Shown here in pieces: positions 19,025-62,001 of a stretch of 64,000 nucleotides of DNA. How positions within the stretch are numbered: position 1 is the first letter of the stretch; each line of letters begins with the position of its first letter. The notes beneath the pieces were generated by a model, which searched no databases, had not been told where the DNA came from, and was given only the letters and a program-made list of their open reading frames with translations. The position numbers were made by a program, and so were the translations under genes. The DNA lies in IMG/VR virus record IMGVR_UViG_3300028840_001395, positions 62,001 through 126,000 of that record; one strand, given 5' to 3'.

Positions 19025-21982
19025 CTACTTGATCTTCCTCTTCCCTGTATATCCCAGCGCCTTGCGGAACTCCTTGACGGCCTTGACCCACTTGGCCCGC
19101 GTGGTGGGGATGCGCTTCAACTCGTAGAAGAAGCGAGTGTTGTCCATGATGCCCCGGTAGAGGGTCTTGTCCTTGTCGGACTTCGCGGCAACTCCTGTAA
19201 AGAAATCAATGGCTTTGTTCTTCTGGGCCTTGGTCTTCAGCTCCGAGATCTGCCCCTTGAACTCATCGACGGCATCATCGAGTCGGGTGTAGAACTCGAT
19301 GTCATCCATCGCGTGGAAGTCGAAGTCCTTGGGATTCTGCTTCACCACCCGGCCATGCCCGAAGTCCCGGTCACCGAACCCCTGCTCCCTCAGCTCCCTG
19401 AGTGCGTGCTGCAATTTGGGGTCATCCTCACGGAAGCCCTGGCTCCTGGGATTCATCCATTGCTGATACTGGGGTGTCCGCAGCTTCTTCGGAGGCAGAC
19501 CCGCCTTGCCACCCACTGCATCGGAGAGGAAGCTCTGGGCGAAATGCTGGCTCTCATGCCGGACGATTCTCCGAAGCTGGTTGCGGCTCCAGTCGTAGAT
19601 GCTGTTGGGCAGCGTGATCTTCATCGTCCTGATGATGTCCGCCCAGGTCGCCAAGGCCCCGGGGATCTCATCAGTGGTCAGGATGACTCTGACCTTCTGG
19701 AAGGGGGTGATTGGCTTGCCCGCCTTGAGGGCCTTGACCTCGGCCCGGAGATCCTTGAGTTCTTGGATCTCGATCTTCCTGAGCTTGGCCAGGCCAGGAT
19801 CTAGCTTCTCACCCCGAGCCTTGAGGGCCTTGATCTTCTTCTCGTCGTCCTTGTTCCACTGCTCCCGCATCTTCAGCCGCTTCTCTGCTCCGGCCAGATA
19901 CTTCTTGATGCGGCCCTGGTCGGCCAGGATGCCCTCGTACTTCCAGCCCTTCAGGAGCGGGGCCACCTCAAACTCCCGCTCCACGTTGCCGGGGGTGGCC
20001 TTCTTGTACTCGGACACCTGGAACTTCTTGAGGTGGGCCTTCTCCTTCTCCAGACGCTCGTTCTCCCCAGCCCCCCACATCTGCTGGGCGTTGACCCGTT
20101 CCTCGATGCCCTTGAACATGCGATCCATCGTGGCGGCGAGCTTGCCCTCACGGTAGAGCTTGTAGAAGTCCCGCGACTTGATGCCGGGTCGCCCGGGGAC
20201 ACCCACGGCTGTCCAGGCGAACTGGCTGGTCACCAGATGCACGATGCTGTTCTTGCCCTTCTGGCCCGCGTACATCTCCCAGAGGGCCTTGGGCTTGGTC
20301 TTCGCTCGGAGGGCCTTGCGGAACGCGGTGAAGGCCTTCTTGATCTTCTGGCCTTCCTTCTTCTTCTCGATGTCCAACTGGCGGTTGTATTCCATGCTCT
20401 TGTCGATGTCCGCCATGATCTTCGTGGCAGCTACCGACAAGGCCCACTTGGAGATCTCTTCGACCATCAAGGGCGGGGCTTCCAGGCGACCCGACGTGCG
20501 CTGGCTTGTCGCTCCAATCCACCTGGCGGCGACCCGGACAGCCACATCCTCATCTTCCAGGTCATCGAGGATGTCCTGCAACGAAGCCGTCTTGCCCAGC
20601 GCCTTCTGCACGAAGGTCTGGGGGTCGAATAGCAGCTTGGTCTTGCCGCCCAGGATGGCCTTCTCCAACGTGTCGGCCACTCCGCCTTGGCTCAGGAAGC
20701 GCAAGATGATCTCGGGGTTCACGTAGGAGCGGATGGTCGTCGCCACATCCTCGTGGCTCAACGCCTCCTGGGCCTTGTGGTAGGCCGCGTCGAGCGTCGC
20801 TGCGATCTCCTGGGCGACCCGTTCGGCCAGGTCGTCACCCTGCTTCTTGGAGAAGCCCTTGATTCTGGCGTAGAGTTCGGCCTGAGCTTCGCGCAGGTTG
20901 TCGAGGACGGTCTCGGTCGCCTTGAGCTTGCGGAAGTCGGTCGGGGAGAAGTCCCCGAGCTGCTCCCGAAAGTACCGCTGCAGGTCGGTGTAGGTGAACT
21001 GCTGACCCTTGGAGGTCGTGAAGATGAACTTCGACCCGCCCTTCTTCGCCTTCTCCACGTAGTCCTTGAGGATCTTGACGATGGAGGCGTCCGAGAGGTT
21101 GGCGACGTTGGTGCCGCCCTTCTTTCCGAGGAACTCCATCGTGACGAAGTTGTTTCGGACGAACTTGACGTGCTTGGGGCCGAGGGTGATGGCCCCGAAG
21201 GTCTCGATCTCGACCTCCTTGCCGTCCTGAATCTTGACGACCTTGTTGCCCTCCTTGCCGGGCCGGATGCCAGTCTCCATGATGATGGCGGTGATGAGGG
21301 CAGCCATCTGGGTCAGTTCATCGCTGCTCTTGAGGTCTTTCTTCACCTGGCGGGCGATCTTGTTGTAGTGCTTGATGAGCTTGTGCATTTTCTGGATCTT
21401 CTTCGCCAGCGTCAGATGCTCGTTCTCGAAGCGGTCGGTGACCTTGGAGATCACCCCGCTCTCGTCCACCTCAACCACGATGTTCTTCGGCAGGAACGCC
21501 CGGATGTCCTCGGGCACGACCTCCCGCAAGGGGGCCTGACTCTCCGCGATGGCGATGGCCTCAAAGCCCTTGTCGGCCTGCTTGCCGACCTCGACCAGCA
21601 CCTTCTTGAGCGGGAACTTGTTGGGGTAGCAGAGCCGGTTCCTCGCCTGATACAAGACCTGGGAGCGCCACGACTTCGCCTTGGGATTCTGTGCCTCTGA
21701 CCCTATCCAGGTGTTCAGGTAGTTCTCGACCTGGGGGAGCACCTTGATCATCTTGATGAAGACCCGTCCCCTGCGGGAGAGGCTCACCTTGTCCTTGCCG
21801 GGCTGGGCGGCGTTGGCCTGGTCAGCGTAGGGCTGCAGCTCCTTCAGGAGCGCCTTGAAGGCATTGAGAGCGCCCTTGATGTGCTTCTCACGGGCCTTGA
21901 TGTCCGCCTGCCAGGCCCGGCTCTCGGGCGTAGGACGCCGAGCACAGACCCAACGGGCAGCTACTCGGGAGGCCGTGGTCAT
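19025..21982 (-). CDS. Type IB topoisomerase fused to a C-terminal zincin-like (HExxH) domain
   Basis: TGIRPGKE, FLGKKG, DFRKLKAT, LSH..ATTIRSYVNP; VRHESQH. Confidence 0.8.
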   Translation of the reverse strand: MTTASRVAARWVCARRPTPESRAWQADIKAREKHIKGALNAFKALLKELQPYADQANAAQPGKDKVSLSRRGRVFIKMIKVLPQVENYLNTWIGSEAQNPKAKSWRSQVLYQARNRLCYPNKFPLKKVLVEVGKQADKGFEAIAIAESQAPLREVVPEDIRAFLPKNIVVEVDESGVISKVTDRFENEHLTLAKKIQKMHKLIKHYNKIARQVKKDLKSSDELTQMAALITAIIMETGIRPGKEGNKVVKIQDGKEVEIETFGAITLGPKHVKFVRNNFVTMEFLGKKGGTNVANLSDASIVKILKDYVEKAKKGGSKFIFTTSKGQQFTYTDLQRYFREQLGDFSPTDFRKLKATETVLDNLREAQAELYARIKGFSKKQGDDLAERVAQEIAATLDAAYHKAQEALSHEDVATTIRSYVNPEIILRFLSQGGVADTLEKAILGGKTKLLFDPQTFVQKALGKTASLQDILDDLEDEDVAVRVAARWIGATSQRTSGRLEAPPLMVEEISKWALSVAATKIMADIDKSMEYNRQLDIEKKKEGQKIKKAFTAFRKALRAKTKPKALWEMYAGQKGKNSIVHLVTSQFAWTAVGVPGRPGIKSRDFYKLYREGKLAATMDRMFKGIEERVNAQQMWGAGENERLEKEKAHLKKFQVSEYKKATPGNVEREFEVAPLLKGWKYEGILADQGRIKKYLAGAEKRLKMREQWNKDDEKKIKALKARGEKLDPGLAKLRKIEIQELKDLRAEVKALKAGKPITPFQKVRVILTTDEIPGALATWADIIRTMKITLPNSIYDWSRNQLRRIVRHESQHFAQSFLSDAVGGKAGLPPKKLRTPQYQQWMNPRSQGFREDDPKLQHALRELREQGFGDRDFGHGRVVKQNPKDFDFHAMDDIEFYTRLDDAVDEFKGQISELKTKAQKNKAIDFFTGVAAKSDKDKTLYRGIMDNTRFFYELKRIPTTRAKWVKAVKEFRKALGYTGKRKIK

Positions 21983-22575
21983 CCCAGCCTGCGGAGCCAG
22001 CGGGCAGCGACCCTCGTTGCCACGACCTTGCGCCACTTCGACCAGCCCTCGTCAGCCAACCCTTGCACATCTTCTTCGGTGCAGACCACCTCATGGGGGG
22101 TCGCCCGGACAGGATGGGCCACGAAAGACTTGTCGAGGCCCTCCACGAAGCGAGCGATCTTCTTGATGTTGTGGAGGTTGTCCTCCCAGACATGGACGGT
22201 ATCGATCTGGGGATGCTTGGCCAGGATACCAGATACCACGGCCACCTTGTAGCCGCCCGTCGAGTCCCCGGGGTTCAGATAGACCTCATCGAAGTTGAGT
22301 CCCGCCTGCTTGAGCAGTTCACCGACACGCAGGCGGTGGGCGCTCTGAAGAGGGCGACCTGTGCAGAGGATGGCCCAGGTGTCCCGGTCGCTGATGCTCT
22401 GCTTGGCTGCCTGGACGGTCTTGCCGATCCACCAGTCGCGGCCCGGCTTGAGGGGAACGCAGGGAGGCCCCAGTGACTCGGGGGCCATGATCCAAGAGTC
22501 CTTGCCCCACCAGTCGGGGCGCTGTGGCGACCGGAAGAGAGTGCCGTCGAAGTCGTAGAGGTGGAGTTCGGCCAT
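21979..22575 (-). CDS. HAD-family phosphatase (Swiss-Army-Knife RNA-repair-like HAD)
   Basis: YDFDGTLFRSP, LCTGR, VWEDN. Confidence 0.75.
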   Translation of the reverse strand: MAELHLYDFDGTLFRSPQRPDWWGKDSWIMAPESLGPPCVPLKPGRDWWIGKTVQAAKQSISDRDTWAILCTGRPLQSAHRLRVGELLKQAGLNFDEVYLNPGDSTGGYKVAVVSGILAKHPQIDTVHVWEDNLHNIKKIARFVEGLDKSFVAHPVRATPHEVVCTEEDVQGLADEGWSKWRKVVATRVAARWLRRLG

Positions 22576-24757: not shown

Positions 24758-24836
24758 GAGGGGCGGAGCCAGTCATTGCCGTAGGCTGGCGGGTAGGCAA
24801 AACGGGCCAGGGTTCGAGTCCCTCAGCCCCTCATCA
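24758..24836 (+). ncRNA. tRNA-like element without a canonical anticodon arm
   Basis: GAGGGGC/GCCCCTC acceptor stem, T arm AGGG-TTCGAGT-CCCT, ends TCA. Confidence 0.5.
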
Positions 24837-25202: not shown

Positions 25203-25316
25203 CGGTATAATCCCCAGGCCCCCTCGGTGAGTGGGAATGGGCAAGGCGGCGGTCAAGGTCCCCCACCGGCCTTGGCGTGAAGTGTCGCGGCTCACCTTGG
25301 GGGCTTCATCAACAAC

Positions 25317-25400: not shown

Positions 25401-25555
25401 GGGGGAGTGGCGAAATTGGTAAACGCGCTGACTCAAACTGGCGTTTCCACCCTACCCTCCCGGCGAGGAGGAACTGCGAAGCGGCTTCAGAGTATCTGGG
25501 CTTGAAACCCAGTGCCTTTCGAGGCTTGTAGGTTCGATTCCTACCTCCCCCTCCA
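25401..25555 (+). tRNA. Interrupted tRNA (anticodon TGA) with a 68-nt insert in the anticodon stem
   Basis: Removing 25431-25498 gives an 87-nt type II cloverleaf. Confidence 0.65.
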
Positions 25556-25719: not shown

Positions 25720-25934
25720 TCTATTCCCTTGCCGCCCCCTGTTTCCGTCGTCAGATGGATGCGGGCGCGGTAGGTTTCCCGCCTGGGCATTCCAACCGTC
25801 CGGGGTCAAGGGTCCGGAGGCCCTGATGGGGGTGACCTCATCGGGAGGCCCGAGAGAAGGTATCCGGTATGGGAACCAGCAGGGGGCGGCTTACCTCTTC
25901 GCCCGTGAGAGTAGTATAGGTGTGGAGGTGTCCC

Positions 25935-26801
25935 GTGATCACCGCGATTCGCATCAGCAACCCCGAGACCGCCTGTGTCCCCTGGTGGTCAGAGGTGGAG
26001 CAACTCAAGGGCCTCAAGAGCATCAAGTTCGACCCTGGACTCAATGTCCTGGTTGGCCCCAATGGCTCGGGCAAGAGCACCATCCTGATGGCCCTGGCCC
26101 GGATGCTTCACTGCGCCCAAGGGGATGTCCAAGTTGTCACGCAGACCTCCGTGATTGACATCTGTGGGCCTGGTCTTGGCTCGAAGATCATGAAGGGCGT
26201 GATGCCCGTCCATGATGGCCTCCCGGTGATGCACTTCGACCCGTCCAAGACGGTCGGTCTCTTCGGCGGCTCTTTCGACTGGGACTTCGGGATGGAGGGC
26301 ATCCAGAACACGATGGCCAAAGGGTCAGCGGGGCAGACCACCCTCATCAGATTCGACCGAGTGGGAGCGGTACTCCTGGGTCACAAGGAACCAGAGGGTG
26401 TCGAGTGGAAGCACACCCCCTACAAGGACACGACCAAGAATCAGATCGAGAAGATCCTCGCGGGCAAGCCGATCAAGGGGAAGAAAAGCCGACCGACCCT
26501 CCTGCTGGATGAACCGACTCGCAGCCTCGACATGAGGTACCAGATGGGGGTCTGGGTCAACATCGCAAGAGCGGCCCAGAAGCGTCTCCAGATCATCGTG
26601 GCGGCGCACTCTCCCCTGGCGCTCCTCATCCCAGGGGCGAACATCATCGAGATGGAGAAGGGCTACGCGGAAGCGGTCAAGCTCAACCTGGACGCGCTCA
26701 TCAACACGGAGCGGATGATCGAACTCATCAACCAGGAACCGCAGAAGCCCAAGAAGAAGGCTGTCAAGAAGCCCAAGAAGAAGGCTGCCAAGAAGAAGTG
26801 A
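25935..26801 (+). CDS. ABC/AAA-type ATPase
   Basis: GPNGSGKST, GSAGQ, LLLDEP, AHS; phage promoter motif upstream. Confidence 0.85.
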   Translation: MITAIRISNPETACVPWWSEVEQLKGLKSIKFDPGLNVLVGPNGSGKSTILMALARMLHCAQGDVQVVTQTSVIDICGPGLGSKIMKGVMPVHDGLPVMHFDPSKTVGLFGGSFDWDFGMEGIQNTMAKGSAGQTTLIRFDRVGAVLLGHKEPEGVEWKHTPYKDTTKNQIEKILAGKPIKGKKSRPTLLLDEPTRSLDMRYQMGVWVNIARAAQKRLQIIVAAHSPLALLIPGANIIEMEKGYAEAVKLNLDALINTERMIELINQEPQKPKKKAVKKPKKKAAKKK

Positions 26802-27024: not shown

Positions 27025-27038
27025 AAAAAGAAAACCAC

Positions 27039-27124
27039 GGAGGCGATCTGGCTGGATGAAGGCCTCGCCTTGAAAGCGAGTGGTCCGAAAGGGCTTGGGG
27101 GTTCGAGTCCCTCCGCCTCCGCCA
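27039..27124 (+). tRNA. tRNA-Ser(TGA)
   Basis: Loop CTTGAAA, CCA. Confidence 0.85.
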
Positions 27125-28687: not shown

Positions 28688-29048
28688 GGGGGCGAAATGG
28701 CTTCGACTGGGGTGTTGAAGCTCAGGGCGCGTTCCGTGATTGTCGCAGGTCACGTTAAACGGCGGCACACTACAACTGCCAACGACGAGGCGGTTCTCCA
28801 GGCGGCTTAGGCCACCTCGTCCGACCGGGAACCCGTATCCCCGAGGGGTCCTGGGAGGGCGTAAGCAAAATCGAGGATAGGGTCTGCTGCTAGCTGCCCG
28901 GCTCGGCAACCTGAAACGTGCTAGGGATGCTGGTCACGAGAGTCTGCCACTGGACGCTCGGGGTCAAAAGACAAACCAGGGGCTATGAACGTAGGGCCTT
29001 GAAGTGGATTGCTTCAGGACAGGGGTTCGACTCCCCTCGCCTCCACCA
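28688..29048 (+). ncRNA. ssrA: tmRNA, tag (A)ANDEAVLQAA
   Basis: GGGGGCG...TTCGAC 5' end, G3.U70, tag ORF 28778-28810, T arm and CCA. Confidence 0.93.
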
Positions 29049-29101: not shown

Positions 29102-29743
29102 GTGGGCCGGAAGAAGATTGAAGTTGTCTGCATGAATCCTGCTTGTGGAAAGCCCCACATGAAGGCCCTCAGCGAGGTCAACAGGTCAAAGAAGCTGGGC
29201 CGGGGTTTCTACTGCTGTCGTTCCTGCTCGGTCACACACGCCAACGAGTTCCTGGGCCGGAAGGCCAAGGAGGAGACCCGGACGTGCGAGGTCTGCGGAA
29301 CCACCTTCCAGGTGCTCGGCAAGGCCAAGTCCAGAATCACCTGCTCCAACGAGTGTGCCGACACCCTCCGCTACAAGAAGATGAACCCAGACTCCAAGGA
29401 GCGACAGCGGGAAGCCGGTCGGCAGACAGGCAACCTGAGTGTGTCCGCCTCCCTCAAGAGTCGGGAGATGCCGAAGTATGCGAAGCTCGTCCCGTATCTG
29501 AAAAGCAAGGGCGTGAACTTCGAGTTCGAGGCAGAGATTGGCCCCTACGTGGTTGATCTCTGCCTGCCTGACCACGGTATTGTAGTGGAGTTCGATGGCC
29601 CCTACCACTCTTGGCATGAGGTGGTGGCCAGCGATGCCCAGAGAGATAACTACCTCACCAGGGCAACCTGGCGGGTGTTCCGAATCGGAGTCGAGGCCGG
29701 AGCAGTGATTTCACCCTCCGCCCTGGCTCCACTTGGTCTTTGA
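29102..29743 (+). CDS. DUF559/Vsr-like endonuclease with zinc-finger N-terminus
   Basis: YVVDL...VVEFDGPYH...DAQRDNYL...WRVFRI; Cys clusters. Confidence 0.8.
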   Translation: MGRKKIEVVCMNPACGKPHMKALSEVNRSKKLGRGFYCCRSCSVTHANEFLGRKAKEETRTCEVCGTTFQVLGKAKSRITCSNECADTLRYKKMNPDSKERQREAGRQTGNLSVSASLKSREMPKYAKLVPYLKSKGVNFEFEAEIGPYVVDLCLPDHGIVVEFDGPYHSWHEVVASDAQRDNYLTRATWRVFRIGVEAGAVISPSALAPLGL

Positions 29744-39106: not shown

Positions 39107-40513
39107 ATGTCGTTCAAGTACCAGGTCATCCGGGACGGGGACAACCGCTTCGTGCTCCCGCAAGTCGGGGAGATGAACTGCGAGGTCGTGGCCTTCCTGA
39201 CCGACGAACTCTTCGACGGAACCGACGAGAAGCTCTGGTCGCAAGCGGCGAACAGCGCCTCGTATCCGGGTGTCACCCACGTCTACCTGATGCCGGACAC
39301 CCACCTGGGCTACGGGGTGCCCATCGGCGGCGTCGTGATCACGGACGGCACGCTCATCCAGGCCGGGAGCGGCTACGACATCTCCTGCGGTGTCCTCTAC
39401 ATGAAGGCCCACATGGGAGCCATCGAGGTCACCGACCCGGAGAAGCGGCTCGCCTGGATCCGGGAGATCGAGAAGCGCGTCGCCACGGGTGTCGGCTCGC
39501 ACCAGCCGGAGTTGATGAAGTCGGCAGACCACAACGTCATTCAGTCCGCCTTCCTCAACGGGGCGGCTCCGCTCAACGTCTCCGCGACGCAGTGCGAGCG
39601 CCTGTGCATCCCGGTGGACGAGCAGTACTTCGACCCGAACCGTATCGAGCGAGCCATCACCAAGGCGGCTCCGCAGATGGGCAGCCTGGGCGGCGGGAAC
39701 CACTTCATCGAGATGCAGGTTGACCCGAGGGACTCGTCCGTCTGGCTCATGGTTCACTGCGGCTCGCGTGGGTTCGGCTGGCAGACGGCCAACCACTACT
39801 ACTACGCCGGGGCCGAGGCCCGTGGACTCGTGCCGAAGAAGCGGGAACAGTCCTGGCTCTACATGGACGAGCCGCTGGGCCGGGAGTACTGGGCGCACCA
39901 CAACGCGGCGGCGAACTACGCCATCGTCAACCGGCACGTCATCGCGGAGCGTCTGCGCGAGGCCACCCAGGAGGTGTTCAACGCCGACGCCAGCGTGTAC
40001 TACGAGATCAGTCACAACCTCATCCAAGAGGAGACCATCTTCCTGCCGGACGGATCCGTGGCCACGGGTTTCGTCCACCGCAAGGGCGCGACTCGCGCTC
40101 TGCCCCCGAAGCATCCGGAGCTGACGGGCACCGCCTGGATCGAGTCGGGGCACCCCTGCCTCATCCCCGGCTCGATGCAGGCGGGTGCGGCCATCCTGTT
40201 CGCCAAGGACTCCGCGAAGTCGGGCCAGTCGGTCAACCACGGCTCCGGGCGTCTCCTGGGTCGCGGCCAGGCCAAGCGGGAGTTCTCCGAGATGCAGGGC
40301 ATGATCGATGAGGAGATGAGCGAGGCCAAGGTCACCTGCGACGATGGCACCGAGGTCGAGGGCATCGTCCTCAACACGGACAAGACGCCGCTGGACGAGT
40401 GCGGCCACGCCTACAAGGATCTCGACACCGTTCTGGGTGTCCTCGAAGCCGAGGGCATCGCGGAGGTCAAGCACCGGATGTTCCCCGTAGCGAACATCAA
40501 GGGTCTGGACTGA
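39107..40513 (+). CDS. rtcB: RtcB-family RNA 3'-phosphate/5'-OH ligase
   Basis: MPDTHLGYGVPIG, DISCG, GSLGGGNHFIE, HCGSRG, HRKGAT, PGSM, HGSGR, YKD. Confidence 0.95.
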   Translation: MSFKYQVIRDGDNRFVLPQVGEMNCEVVAFLTDELFDGTDEKLWSQAANSASYPGVTHVYLMPDTHLGYGVPIGGVVITDGTLIQAGSGYDISCGVLYMKAHMGAIEVTDPEKRLAWIREIEKRVATGVGSHQPELMKSADHNVIQSAFLNGAAPLNVSATQCERLCIPVDEQYFDPNRIERAITKAAPQMGSLGGGNHFIEMQVDPRDSSVWLMVHCGSRGFGWQTANHYYYAGAEARGLVPKKREQSWLYMDEPLGREYWAHHNAAANYAIVNRHVIAERLREATQEVFNADASVYYEISHNLIQEETIFLPDGSVATGFVHRKGATRALPPKHPELTGTAWIESGHPCLIPGSMQAGAAILFAKDSAKSGQSVNHGSGRLLGRGQAKREFSEMQGMIDEEMSEAKVTCDDGTEVEGIVLNTDKTPLDECGHAYKDLDTVLGVLEAEGIAEVKHRMFPVANIKGLD

Positions 40514-45463: not shown

Positions 45464-46012
45464 CTACCCGGACTCCAAGGCTCCGTCCCAGTACTGCACG
45501 GTGCCGAGGTAATCCTGCCACGTCGGCGGCATCCCCTCCGTCCACGAGAGAACGGGGAAGCTGACACCGGGCAGCGACTTCGGCTTGACCGGCTTCGAGC
45601 GGAGCTTCATCCTGGCCTGCTCCGGCGTCCTGTCCTTCTTGCGCTGGTTGCACTCCATGCAGGACACGACGATGTTCTCCCAGCGAGTCCGGCCCCCTGC
45701 AGCCTGCGGGATGACGTGATCGAAGGTGAACTCCGCCATCGACACCTTGGTGCCGCAGTACTGGCAGGTGCCCTTGTCACGCAGCCAGACGTTCTTCCGG
45801 TTGAACTTGACGCCCTTGCGGAAGATGCCGGTGACCTTGTGGACGAAGCGCACGATGGACGGCATCGGGAACACCTGTGACGGCGACCGAATTGTCCGAT
45901 CCTCATACTCCTCCACCACCGCTGCGCGTCCCGAGATGACCCAGGTGATCGCCTTCTGCCAGCTTACGCGGCTGATCGGCATGTAGGTGTTGGTGAGTAC
46001 TAGCGTGTCCAT
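45464..46012 (-). CDS. HNH endonuclease (McrA-like)
   Basis: CQYCG, DHVIP, CMECNQRK. Confidence 0.9.
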   Translation of the reverse strand: MDTLVLTNTYMPISRVSWQKAITWVISGRAAVVEEYEDRTIRSPSQVFPMPSIVRFVHKVTGIFRKGVKFNRKNVWLRDKGTCQYCGTKVSMAEFTFDHVIPQAAGGRTRWENIVVSCMECNQRKKDRTPEQARMKLRSKPVKPKSLPGVSFPVLSWTEGMPPTWQDYLGTVQYWDGALESG

Positions 46013-48533: not shown

Positions 48534-48628
48534 TGGTAGCCCCGGAGGGAGTCGAACCCTCGGTGGAGCCCCTACGTCTCCGGCACGGTTTATAAGACCG
48601 CCGCTGTGACCGTTCAGCTTACGGGGCC
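48534..48628 (-). tRNA. tRNA-Ile(TAT) with long variable arm
   Basis: Loop CTTATAA, about 23-nt variable region, CCA. Confidence 0.75.
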
Positions 48629-51230: not shown

Positions 51231-51306
51231 TGGAGCGGACGACCAGGATCGAACTGGCGACCTCCTGCTTGGCAAGCAGGTGCTCTACCGGCTGAGCTAC
51301 GTCCGC
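51231..51306 (-). tRNA. tRNA-Gly(GCC)
   Basis: Loop TTGCCAA, U73. Confidence 0.92.
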
Positions 51307-51926
51307 ATCTTGTCCCACCCCTCGGCTGCGGACGGGCTAACCGCCACGCACCTTTTCAGGTGAGCCACTTCCTCGGATGACCACACATAACAGGTGTCCG
51401 CGTAGAGGTCATACCCGACGATGAAGTCGAAGTCTGCCTTCTGGTATCGAACCGCCTTGTTGTGGCCTTGGACACACTTGAGAGACACAGAGGGAAGACC
51501 CTTCCCCGAGGCATGTGCCCACTTGACCTGCACCTTCAAGATTCGACCTGTCTCTGGAATCTCCACTACCCAGTCGGCCTTGTCTCCATCGAAAGGCGAC
51601 CCAAAGACATTGAACCCACAGACGGTCATCCTAAACAAGACGGCTGCCTCAGCGATCTTCGCCTTCTGAAGGCGCGAGGCATTGGGGTTCATCATCCGAT
51701 AAAGAGGGGACTCTGCCCCGCGTGACTTTTTGGGGTGCCCCCCTCGTTGATTTTCCTTACGCTTGGCTGCCTGCTCACTCTTTGTCAAAGGATGGGGCTT
51801 GAGCCATCCACTCAGAGAACCTTTCGAGGCCCCTGTCCGTTGGTGGATTTCTCGCAGAGACAAGCCTTCCTCAACTCGGAGCCGAATGCACTCCGCCTTC
51901 AATTTAGGATTAGACTTTCCGCGCAA
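51297..51926 (-). CDS. HTH + PD-(D/E)xK endonuclease (group I intron-associated type)
   Basis: LSLREIHQRTGASKGSLSGW; D...LKVQVK...DFDFIVGY. Confidence 0.8.
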   Translation of the reverse strand: MRGKSNPKLKAECIRLRVEEGLSLREIHQRTGASKGSLSGWLKPHPLTKSEQAAKRKENQRGGHPKKSRGAESPLYRMMNPNASRLQKAKIAEAAVLFRMTVCGFNVFGSPFDGDKADWVVEIPETGRILKVQVKWAHASGKGLPSVSLKCVQGHNKAVRYQKADFDFIVGYDLYADTCYVWSSEEVAHLKRCVAVSPSAAEGWDKMRT

Positions 51927-52061: not shown

Positions 52062-52184
52062 GGTGGGGAGAGACGGTGTTGCCGACTGTCAGTAGGGCTA
52101 CGGGAATCGAACCCGCATCTCCGGGCCTCACCCGGCGTGTTGTCCATTACACCAAGTCCTTGTCGGCGGCGTCCCGTGCCCACC
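52062..52184 (-). ncRNA. tRNA-like core with extended terminal stem (1)
   Basis: D and T arms, 5-nt anticodon loop, flanks pair GGTGGG/CCCACC and GCCGAC/GTCGGC. Confidence 0.6.
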
Positions 52185-52377: not shown

Positions 52378-52506
52378 GGTCGAGGCAAGGTGTGTGTCGC
52401 GTACAGGTGAAGAAAACGGGTCTCGAACCCGCAACCTTCGGCTTGATAAGGCCGACGCTCAACCATTTGAGCTATCTCTTCTGAAACGACACCGCAGTCC
52501 TCGACC
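52378..52506 (-). ncRNA. tRNA-like core with extended terminal stem (2)
   Basis: 8-nt loop CTTATCAA, no CCA, flanks pair GGTCGAGG/CCTCGACC and GTGTCG/CGACAC. Confidence 0.65.
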
Positions 52507-59799: not shown

Positions 59800-59929
59800 C
59801 AGGATTCGGGAGAGAGGCCCGGTCATCGGTGGGGGTCGAACCCACGACCTCCGGGTTGAAAAAGCCGTCAAGCCGTCCCGACGCTCTGCCGACTGAGCTA
59901 CGACTACGTGGACTTCATCCCGTCCCCTG
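59800..59929 (-). ncRNA. tRNA-like core with extended terminal stem (3)
   Basis: Canonical D and T arms, 21-nt anticodon loop, no CCA, flanks pair CAGG/CCTG and CGGGA/TCCCG. Confidence 0.6.
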
Positions 59930-61998: not shown

Positions 61999-62001
61999 AC
62001 C

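Follow-up and report, generated by a model that had tools for sequence, protein, structure and literature searches.

Results

An interrupted tRNA gene in a huge phage genome

The window, by which we mean the whole 64,000-nucleotide stretch analysed here (positions 62,001 to 126,000 of IMG/VR contig IMGVR_UViG_3300028840_001395), carries two tRNA arrays with 66 tRNA calls and one tmRNA call, and a tRNA gene at 25401-25555 (+) is split by an insert of 68 nt, located at the upper end of the 5' strand of its anticodon stem. The contig, with a length of 435,804 bp and a GC content of ~61%, is the genome of a huge bacteriophage, and the tmRNA, the encoded CCA ends and the long-variable-arm tRNA-Tyr genes in the window indicate that its host is a bacterium. 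Other proteins encoded in the window are GroEL-like, topoisomerase IB, SNF2, RNase HII and M23 peptidase proteins.

The tmRNA gene (28688-29048, +) specifies the tag peptide ANDEAVLQAA (ANNEAVLQAA in the relative L066, 2702-3059) and is neighboured by conserved ORFs of 317 aa and 136 aa with no assigned function. Three endonuclease genes lie in or beside the tRNA arrays, encoding an HNH protein (45464-46012, -), a PD-(D/E)XK protein (51297-51926, -) and a DUF559 (Vsr-like) protein (29159-29743, +), and these may be homing-type elements.

The two outer parts of the interrupted gene were delimited with the Rfam tRNA alignment and with the cloverleaf that ARAGORN drew after in-silico splicing. 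Exon 1 (25401-25429, +) consists of the 5' acceptor strand GGGGGAG (25401-25407), followed by U8 and G9, a Leu-type D arm (25410-25426) with a 3-bp stem and an 11-nt loop containing GG, nucleotide 26 (25427) and the two bases with which the anticodon stem begins (25428-25429). The intervening sequence (25430-25497, +) thus enters between tRNA positions 26 and 29, and its removal restores the cloverleaf both in the window and in the diverged homolog L059 described below. Exon 2 (25498-25555, +), which is also supported by compensatory stem changes relative to L059, completes the anticodon arm CTGGG/CTTGAAA/CCCAG with the anticodon TGA at 25503-25505, and continues with a variable arm with a 4-bp stem (25513-25527), the T arm GTAGG/TTCGATT/CCTAC (25528-25544), the 3' acceptor strand CTCCCCC (25545-25551), which pairs with 25401-25407 at 7 of 7 positions, U73 (25552) and CCA (25553-25555).

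When the 68 nt were removed in silico, an 87-nt type-II cloverleaf with zero stem mismatches, a UGA anticodon, U73 and CCA was obtained, and ARAGORN called this sequence a perfect tRNA-Ser(tga). The features by which we recognized a type-II tRNA (Rfam RF00005), namely a 7-bp acceptor stem, a D arm with G18G19, a 5-bp anticodon stem, a 7-nt anticodon loop with U33 and a purine at position 37, a long variable arm, a T loop of the form GTTCGAWTC and a discriminator followed by CCA, were found in a cloverleaf that reaches across the insert and becomes perfect once the insert is taken out. Sequence inspection, Rfam and ARAGORN therefore agree with a preliminary description of this locus, in which a real tRNA body with a TGA anticodon and U73 was said to be interrupted in the 5' strand of its anticodon stem. 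The same description called both the D arm and the variable arm Leu-like, which holds for the D arm, also found in many phage tRNA-Leu genes, but not for the variable arm, which ends in CTTG as in the four Ser tRNAs of the array and unlike the Leu tRNAs. U73 is atypical for tRNA-Ser. The uninterrupted tRNA-Ser(UGA) of the array (27038-27123, +) is itself atypical, scoring under the Rfam tRNA threshold with tRNA-Sec as its best match (35.6 bits); in the relative L059, a well-scoring Ser(UGA) gene is placed elsewhere in the array.

The insert is an irregular hairpin

Single-sequence folds and RNAalifold indicated that the insert folds on its own as an irregular hairpin (25431-25493, +) in both lineages. 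The closing helix ACUC/GAGU (25431-25434 with 25490-25493) is followed by an isolated pair (25440 with 25485), a middle helix (25442-25449 with 25475-25483) and an apical helix (25456-25459 with 25468-25471). The complementarity of the insert ends noted earlier (ACTC at 25431-25434 and GAGT at 25490-25493) is thus the base of this hairpin, whereas the flanking CTG repeat, although present in the window (25428-25430 and 25496-25498), is not a conserved feature and is replaced by only CC in L059. Because of this repeat, the boundary of the insert can slide by -2 to +1; the boundaries used here (columns 29|30 and 97|98 of alignment A2) also yield a perfect tRNA in L059. A 27-nt block of the insert (25468-25494, +) is identical in L059 in alignments A1 and A2 and occurs only once in the window at up to 3 mismatches. 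This block holds a Ser/Tyr-type D-arm-like motif (CTG, an 11-nt loop with AGCGG, and CAG), which supplies the D arm of the inner tRNA model of ARAGORN discussed below.

No Rfam match to group I or group II introns, nor to hammerhead, twister, HDV-like/theta, pistol or hatchet ribozymes, was found for either sequence at E values up to 10. With 68 nt (62 nt in L059), the insert falls far short of the catalytic cores of group I (at least ~200 nt) and group II introns (at least ~400 nt), as the preliminary description had argued for group I, and it cannot be self-splicing by any known fold. We also scanned the junctions of both sequences for a bulge-helix-bulge (two 3-nt bulges, 4 bp apart) and found no strict motif; a relaxed version present only in the window, and absent from L059, would give a poor Leu(CAA) reading.

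No promoter-like or terminator-like site was found inside the element. A mobile repeat of the MITE or REP type was considered and rejected, given a single copy in the window and related loci and flanks that differ between the lineages (CTG versus CC in L059). The first part of the insert bears an apparent likeness to a hairpin spacer of L065, but this remained below BLAST significance and was likewise discarded.

How tRNA finders and folding programs read the locus

The Rfam tRNA model spans 25401-25552 from end to end and treats the insert as a local insertion, with a score of 39.9 bits (gathering threshold 29) and an E value of 6e-5 calculated on the whole window. With default settings, ARAGORN reported only a poorer inner tRNA-Ser (25467-25555), in which 5 of 7 acceptor pairs form and the D stem is hardly paired; once introns were permitted, its call for 25401-25555 became Leu(caa), containing a 58-nt intron and a poorly formed anticodon stem. 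We rejected this latter reading on account of the mismatched anticodon stem, the 27-nt unstructured variable region that it entails and an 'anticodon' that is not kept in L059.

RNAalifold, applied to the whole alignment, recovered the acceptor, anticodon, variable and T arms together with the extra hairpin. The cloverleaf with hairpin is essentially the minimum-free-energy fold of L059, whereas for the window an alternative in which the outer 5' strand pairs with the C-rich part of the insert is more stable by 4 kcal/mol.

Relatives with and without the element

Three assemblies, each from a different sample (L057, L061 and the IMG/VR contig), contain the element with identical sequence, and a diverged copy is present in two Logan runs (L058 and L059), on which grounds we rejected an assembly artefact or chimera. 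In L058/L059, the homolog occupies the same array position, between tRNA-Thr(GGU) and tRNA-Glu(CUC), and the DNA around the locus is ~90% identical to the window; among the neighbouring proteins, the identities are 91% for a small upstream ORF, 80% for the downstream 317-aa ORF and 50% for an AAA ATPase. The L059 homolog, 151 nt in length, is called by neither ARAGORN nor Rfam, its best match being tRNA-Sec at 22 bits. In a third lineage (L065, from ENA), the whole element is missing, and 8 nt separate tRNA-Thr(GGU) from the next gene, tRNA-Glu(CUC), with a 317-aa ORF that is 66% identical. The existence of this lineage indicates that the element is dispensable. L058/L059 and L065 were found by protein look-ups through the neighbouring genes, and the three lineages share the same tRNA order.

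The AAA_21/ABC-type ATPase gene (288-293 aa), located inside the tRNA array at 25920-26801 (+) in the window and at 2021-2845 in L059, is absent from L065; its presence matches that of the interrupted tRNA across the three lineages, which may be coincidence.

Searches of IMG/VR with five DNA patterns, from the element or a neighbouring tRNA, found no further copies beyond the same phage, and a scan of JGI metagenomes with the insert block gave two chance matches only. Only generic tRNA similarity was detected among GenBank phages; the IMG/VR relatives of the AAA ATPase (L003 and L004) contained no tRNAs, and the gene contexts of P0005, P0003, P0117 and P0119 led to the same phage or to nothing syntenic. 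The D-arm pattern matched 52 other viral contigs in IMG/VR, none of which had the 3' half of this tRNA. These contigs (L005-L056, matched by a D-arm 19-mer) represent 39 distinct phage loci with an identical Leu-type D arm, 13 of which are not ordinary tRNA calls, and for 7 of these 13 ARAGORN placed inserts of 11-212 nt when introns were allowed. Interrupted type-II tRNA genes hence seem to be common in viral contigs. One of these loci, L040, has a 212-nt insert in a Leu(taa) gene and is probably a group I-type case.

The structure is conserved through substantial sequence change

Alignment A2 of the window element with that of L059 comprises 157 columns and contains 24 substitutions and 3 indels. 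Exon 1 is identical at 27 of 29 positions, whereas the spacer upstream of it has diverged at about half of its positions. The anticodon stem changed from CUGGG/CCCAG in the window to CCCGG/CCGGG in L059, and in the variable stem of L059 one pair was gained and a U-A pair was swapped for C-G. The anticodon and the discriminator also differ, being UGA with U73 in the window and GUA with A73 in L059, and removal of the L059 insert at the common boundaries gave a perfect 89-nt tRNA-Tyr(GUA) with A73, the discriminator of the ordinary Tyr tRNAs of the array. The anticodon loop keeps U33 and A37. Both anticodons are already supplied by other genes of the arrays.

All 41 predicted pairs, 24 in the cloverleaf and 17 in the insert hairpin, can form in both sequences. 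Three double changes in the anticodon and variable stems are compensatory, and two further changes lead to wobble pairs; the 17 hairpin pairs are invariant, with all 13 differing insert columns (two indels included) unpaired. When the alignment was slid to other registers, pairing dropped to 38-54% and no compensatory pairs remained. In simulations, all 24 body pairs stayed intact after 8 random stem substitutions with P = 4e-4 and all 41 pairs stayed intact after 24 random substitutions with P = 2e-5, values that come from two sequences, with a single diverged homolog, and from a hairpin inferred from these same two. Covariation in any helix of at least 5 bp was not significant in this G+C-rich pair of sequences, the observed level being reached in 8.6% of simulations, and the additional covarying column pairs 29/111 and 67/150 were within chance expectation.

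The element is the most diverged tRNA-like unit of its stretch, exceeding its neighbour tRNAs, and the insert has persisted in a neighbourhood in which indels and tRNA gain or loss between lineages are frequent. A stretch recombined in from a functional tRNA that we have not seen could give the same picture as compensatory change, and we searched the sequence at hand for a local paralog that might have been the donor of a gene conversion but found none. Random decay in homologs had been named at the outset as the outcome that would speak against a functional element, and the opposite was observed, with 41 of 41 pairs kept through 24 substitutions in L059; a pseudogene, as recognized by random stem decay, was judged unlikely for the two lineages on the same grounds (P = 2e-5). 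We consider it probable, as far as comparison of the sequences can tell, that the interrupted tRNA is maintained under selection.

The insert resembles the junction of two tandem tRNA genes

The insert begins with CTCAAAC, which is the anticodon loop of the tRNA-Leu(CAA) of the array. It further contains CCTAC and then CCTCCC, resembling a real tRNA 3' end (the 3' strand of the T stem and the acceptor strand), and continues with GGAGGAA and the Ser/Tyr-type D-arm-like motif. The tRNA body itself is mixed, with a Leu-like 5' part and a Ser/Tyr-like 3' part. This combination of a Leu-like 5' part, a Ser/Tyr-like 3' part and a tRNA-like insert leads us to infer a fusion of two adjacent tRNA genes, in which a Leu(CAA)-like gene would have given the 5' half and a Ser/Tyr-like gene the 3' half. 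The outer halves would now make up one tRNA, and the decayed inner halves with their junction would be the insert; the 27-nt block probably descends from the 5' half of the downstream parent gene.

Other unusual elements in the arrays

Several further oddities were recorded in the arrays. The 114-nt spacer between tRNA-Thr(UGU) and tRNA-Thr(GGU) (25203-25316, +) forms a long hairpin kept in 3 of 3 lineages with 6 compensatory pairs, has a TATAAT-like hexamer at its start and matches no Rfam family. A second interrupted tRNA (59821-59907, -) contains a 14-nt insert (59863-59876) between positions 31 and 32, which includes a tandem ACGGCTT repeat; in-silico removal of the insert leaves a cloverleaf of 73 nt that reads TTC at the anticodon, has a single mismatch in the acceptor stem and lacks CCA. 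The tRNA-Ile(TAT) gene (48534-48628, -) is 95 nt long and has a 21-nt extra arm in the variable region, which is unusual for class I, and the tRNA at 52406-52481 (-) has an 8-nt anticodon loop for which ARAGORN gave the anticodon 'tatc'. A tRNA-like gene of 70 nt (52092-52161, -) has a shortened anticodon loop and no CCA. A 76-nt tRNA-like sequence (24758-24833, +) combines a perfect 7-bp acceptor stem and a T arm with aberrant D and anticodon arms; it was called by neither ARAGORN nor Rfam, and other sequence takes its place in L059.

RNA-repair genes and the search for a splicing nuclease

As had been pointed out, an RtcB RNA ligase is encoded in the window (39107-40513, +); the 468-aa protein is full length with respect to PF01139 (E = 8.5e-89, profile positions 1-426 of 426). 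A HAD phosphatase of the 'Swiss Army Knife' RNA-repair type (21979-22575, -; Pfam PF10307, E = 2.3e-15) is encoded by a gene that adjoins the tRNA array, and PF10307 was also assigned to the same gene in L057. Together with RtcB, this phosphatase indicates an RNA-repair capacity in the phage. No EndA/Sen, Cas6 or similar RNase was found by Pfam and PHROGs searches among ~70 ORFs of the 64-kb window, and the ORFs flanking RtcB and those inside the arrays offered no candidate for an element-specific nuclease in the same databases.

Discussion

A tRNA that may be spliced

The conservation of the hairpin in a related phage suggests that the insert is probably an unusual intron. On this reading, the array transcript would be matured by RNase P and 3' processing, while the hairpin would hold the insert outside the tRNA fold. 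An endonuclease of the phage or the host would cut on both sides of the hairpin base, the exons would stay together through the acceptor stem and tertiary contacts, and a ligase would join them, for which the phage RtcB would be the obvious candidate if the cuts left cyclic phosphate and 5'-OH ends. The product would be an extra tRNA-Ser(UGA), or a tRNA-Tyr in the L059 relative.

Taken as a whole, the statement that an interrupted tRNA is kept by selection here and undergoes splicing in vivo is one that we put forward tentatively, with a likelihood somewhat short of even, from genomic sequence. Its components differ in strength. Within the splicing reading, it is doubtful that RtcB is the ligase, and the usual explanation for RtcB in jumbo phages is the repair of tRNAs cut by host nucleases (PMC7824862). 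The full proposal of a protein-dependent bacteriophage tRNA splicing system that works without a bulge-helix-bulge, with an undiscovered endonuclease excising the anticodon-stem hairpin and RtcB sealing the exons, appears rather unlikely to us. Protein-based tRNA splicing is, to our knowledge, not known in bacteria.

Alternatives to splicing

The insert may instead never be removed, a reading to which we attach a smaller but real weight. The mature RNA would then be ~150 nt long and would bear a fifth arm at the hinge between the D stem and the anticodon stem, giving a four-way junction together with the long variable arm, and such an RNA may translate, or may serve as a decoy or sponge for tRNA-targeting nucleases or tRNA-binding factors. 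The independent hairpin, its ends joined by a conserved 4-bp helix, the minimum-free-energy fold of L059 as a cloverleaf with an extra arm, and the combination of invariant stems with variable loops are all consistent with a permanent arm, as is the outcome of the searches for a splicing signal in both sequences and for a splicing enzyme in ~70 window ORFs, neither of which was found. Phage tRNA arrays are counter-measures to tRNA-cleaving defences, which favours the decoy version, and the anticodon differs between the lineages, as that of a target mimic might. However, we know of no translating tRNA with an arm at this position, and the hinge at positions 26/44 must flex in decoding. The association of A73 with GUA suggests a real aminoacylation identity, and the U-to-C change at column 29 of exon 1 is matched by its partner in the 3' strand, which is expected only if exon 1 joins the anticodon stem, although this last argument is weak.

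A non-functional fusion pseudogene, produced by deletion between neighbouring tRNA genes and conserved only through short divergence and recombination, is in our view unlikely. The resemblance of the insert to junction debris, the absence of the element from the L065 lineage, the redundancy of its anticodons with other array genes and the other odd or broken tRNAs in the window would all fit such an origin, and the ~90% identity of the flanking DNA means that divergence is modest. Against it, the element has changed more than any other tRNA-like unit there and yet has lost zero pairs, it has kept U33 and A37, and its discriminator has changed together with its anticodon, whereas non-functional DNA in the array has visibly been deleted or replaced between lineages.

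It is more improbable still that the real gene is the inner 89-nt tRNA-Ser(UGA) (25467-25555) and that 25401-25466 is what remains of the 5' part of a defunct tRNA-Leu(CAA) gene, acting only as a leader that RNase P would remove. This model is the default call of ARAGORN and would account for the Leu(CAA)-like anticodon loop CTCAAAC with which the insert opens; a joint change (G-C to A-U) affects columns 67 and 150 within an alternative 5-bp inner helix, and the minimum-free-energy fold of the window pairs the outer 5' strand with the insert. The joint change is nevertheless within chance, the inner acceptor stem has only 5 of 7 pairs in the window and 4 of 7 in L059, with A1 facing C72, the inner D stem hardly pairs, and neither ARAGORN nor Rfam calls this gene in L059. 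The supposedly dead outer 5' half, by contrast, is identical at 27 of 29 positions and pairs 7 of 7 with the 3' end in both lineages, next to an upstream spacer of which about half has diverged.

Finally, we regard as very improbable that the hairpin is an RNase III-type site from which a two-piece tRNA held by the acceptor stem would arise, or halves resealed by a 5'-phosphate/3'-OH ligase rather than RtcB: the insert, an irregular hairpin of roughly 20 bp with internal loops, does resemble phage RNase III sites and the array contains another long conserved hairpin (25203-25316), but an Rnl-type ligase was not found in the window and split tRNAs are, as far as we know, confined to archaea.

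Comparison with known interrupted tRNAs

Judged by their description, the closest precedent for the interrupted tRNA is provided by the conserved 'enigmatic' tRNA introns of the Lak megaphages, one of which is itself tRNA-like and which eukaryotic tRNAscan settings assign to the canonical position following the anticodon or close to it (Devoto et al. 2019; PMC6784885). Both cases involve a huge phage of bacteria, an overlong tRNA gene, an insert whose removal restores a tRNA and retention of the insert among relatives; moreover, tRNA-Tyr(GTA) is among the affected Lak genes, as GUA is the anticodon in L059, and the tRNA-like Lak intron may be set beside the partly tRNA-like insert described here. 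They differ in position, canonical in Lak and in the 5' strand of the anticodon stem here, and in genome type, as Lak has ~26% GC and an alternative code whereas this genome has 61% GC. The element described here falls within the descriptive class of megaphage 'enigmatic' introns (PMC6784885), which has no mechanistic definition, and adds to it a non-canonical anticodon-stem position, a clear hairpin anatomy and two alleles with different anticodon/discriminator pairs.

The non-canonical tRNA introns of archaea, to which the insert had been likened from the start, are similarly short and located in a stem, with exons held by the tRNA body, and an RtcB-type ligase is available in both settings. 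This analogy did not hold up, however: the two sequences share no bulge-helix-bulge, no EndA/Sen domain was found in ~70 window ORFs, and the host is a bacterium. Group I introns of bacterial-type tRNA genes, such as cyanobacterial tRNA-Leu(UAA), are likewise intervening sequences but, unlike the present insert of 62-68 nt without an Rfam match, they lie in the anticodon loop rather than in the stem. Split and permuted tRNAs (Nanoarchaeum, Caldivirga and Cyanidioschyzon) have 5' and 3' parts separated by unrelated or relic tRNA sequence, and the insert here resembles the 3'-end/5'-end junction of two tandem genes; the parts of the present gene, in contrast, form one transcript in normal order, and the known cases use a bulge-helix-bulge. 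The theta (HDV-like) ribozymes that adjoin phage suppressor tRNAs (PMC10879173) are structured RNAs on a phage tRNA that would aid its maturation and leave RtcB-compatible ends, but they are located downstream of the tRNA, whereas the hairpin lies inside it and matches no ribozyme family.

Implications for phage tRNA biology

Protein-catalysed tRNA splicing is regarded as archaeal and eukaryotic, and the tRNA introns of bacteria and their viruses are considered to be exclusively self-splicing. Megaphage tRNA inserts that are not self-splicing were reported in 2019 and are still unexplained (PMC6784885). The interrupted tRNA provides a compact test case for this problem, with exact boundaries, a conserved hairpin, two anticodon alleles, a lineage without the element and a co-encoded RtcB, and it illustrates how an intron-like element can arise by fusion of neighbouring tRNA genes. 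If the insert is not spliced, the locus would encode a five-armed tRNA-like RNA, possibly a decoy in a tRNA-centred phage-host conflict. If it is spliced, a new endonuclease and a physiological substrate for phage or bacterial RtcB would be implied, and protein-dependent excision sealed by RtcB, if true, would give this ligase a genuine splicing role in phages or bacteria and would explain the 'enigmatic' tRNA introns of megaphages.
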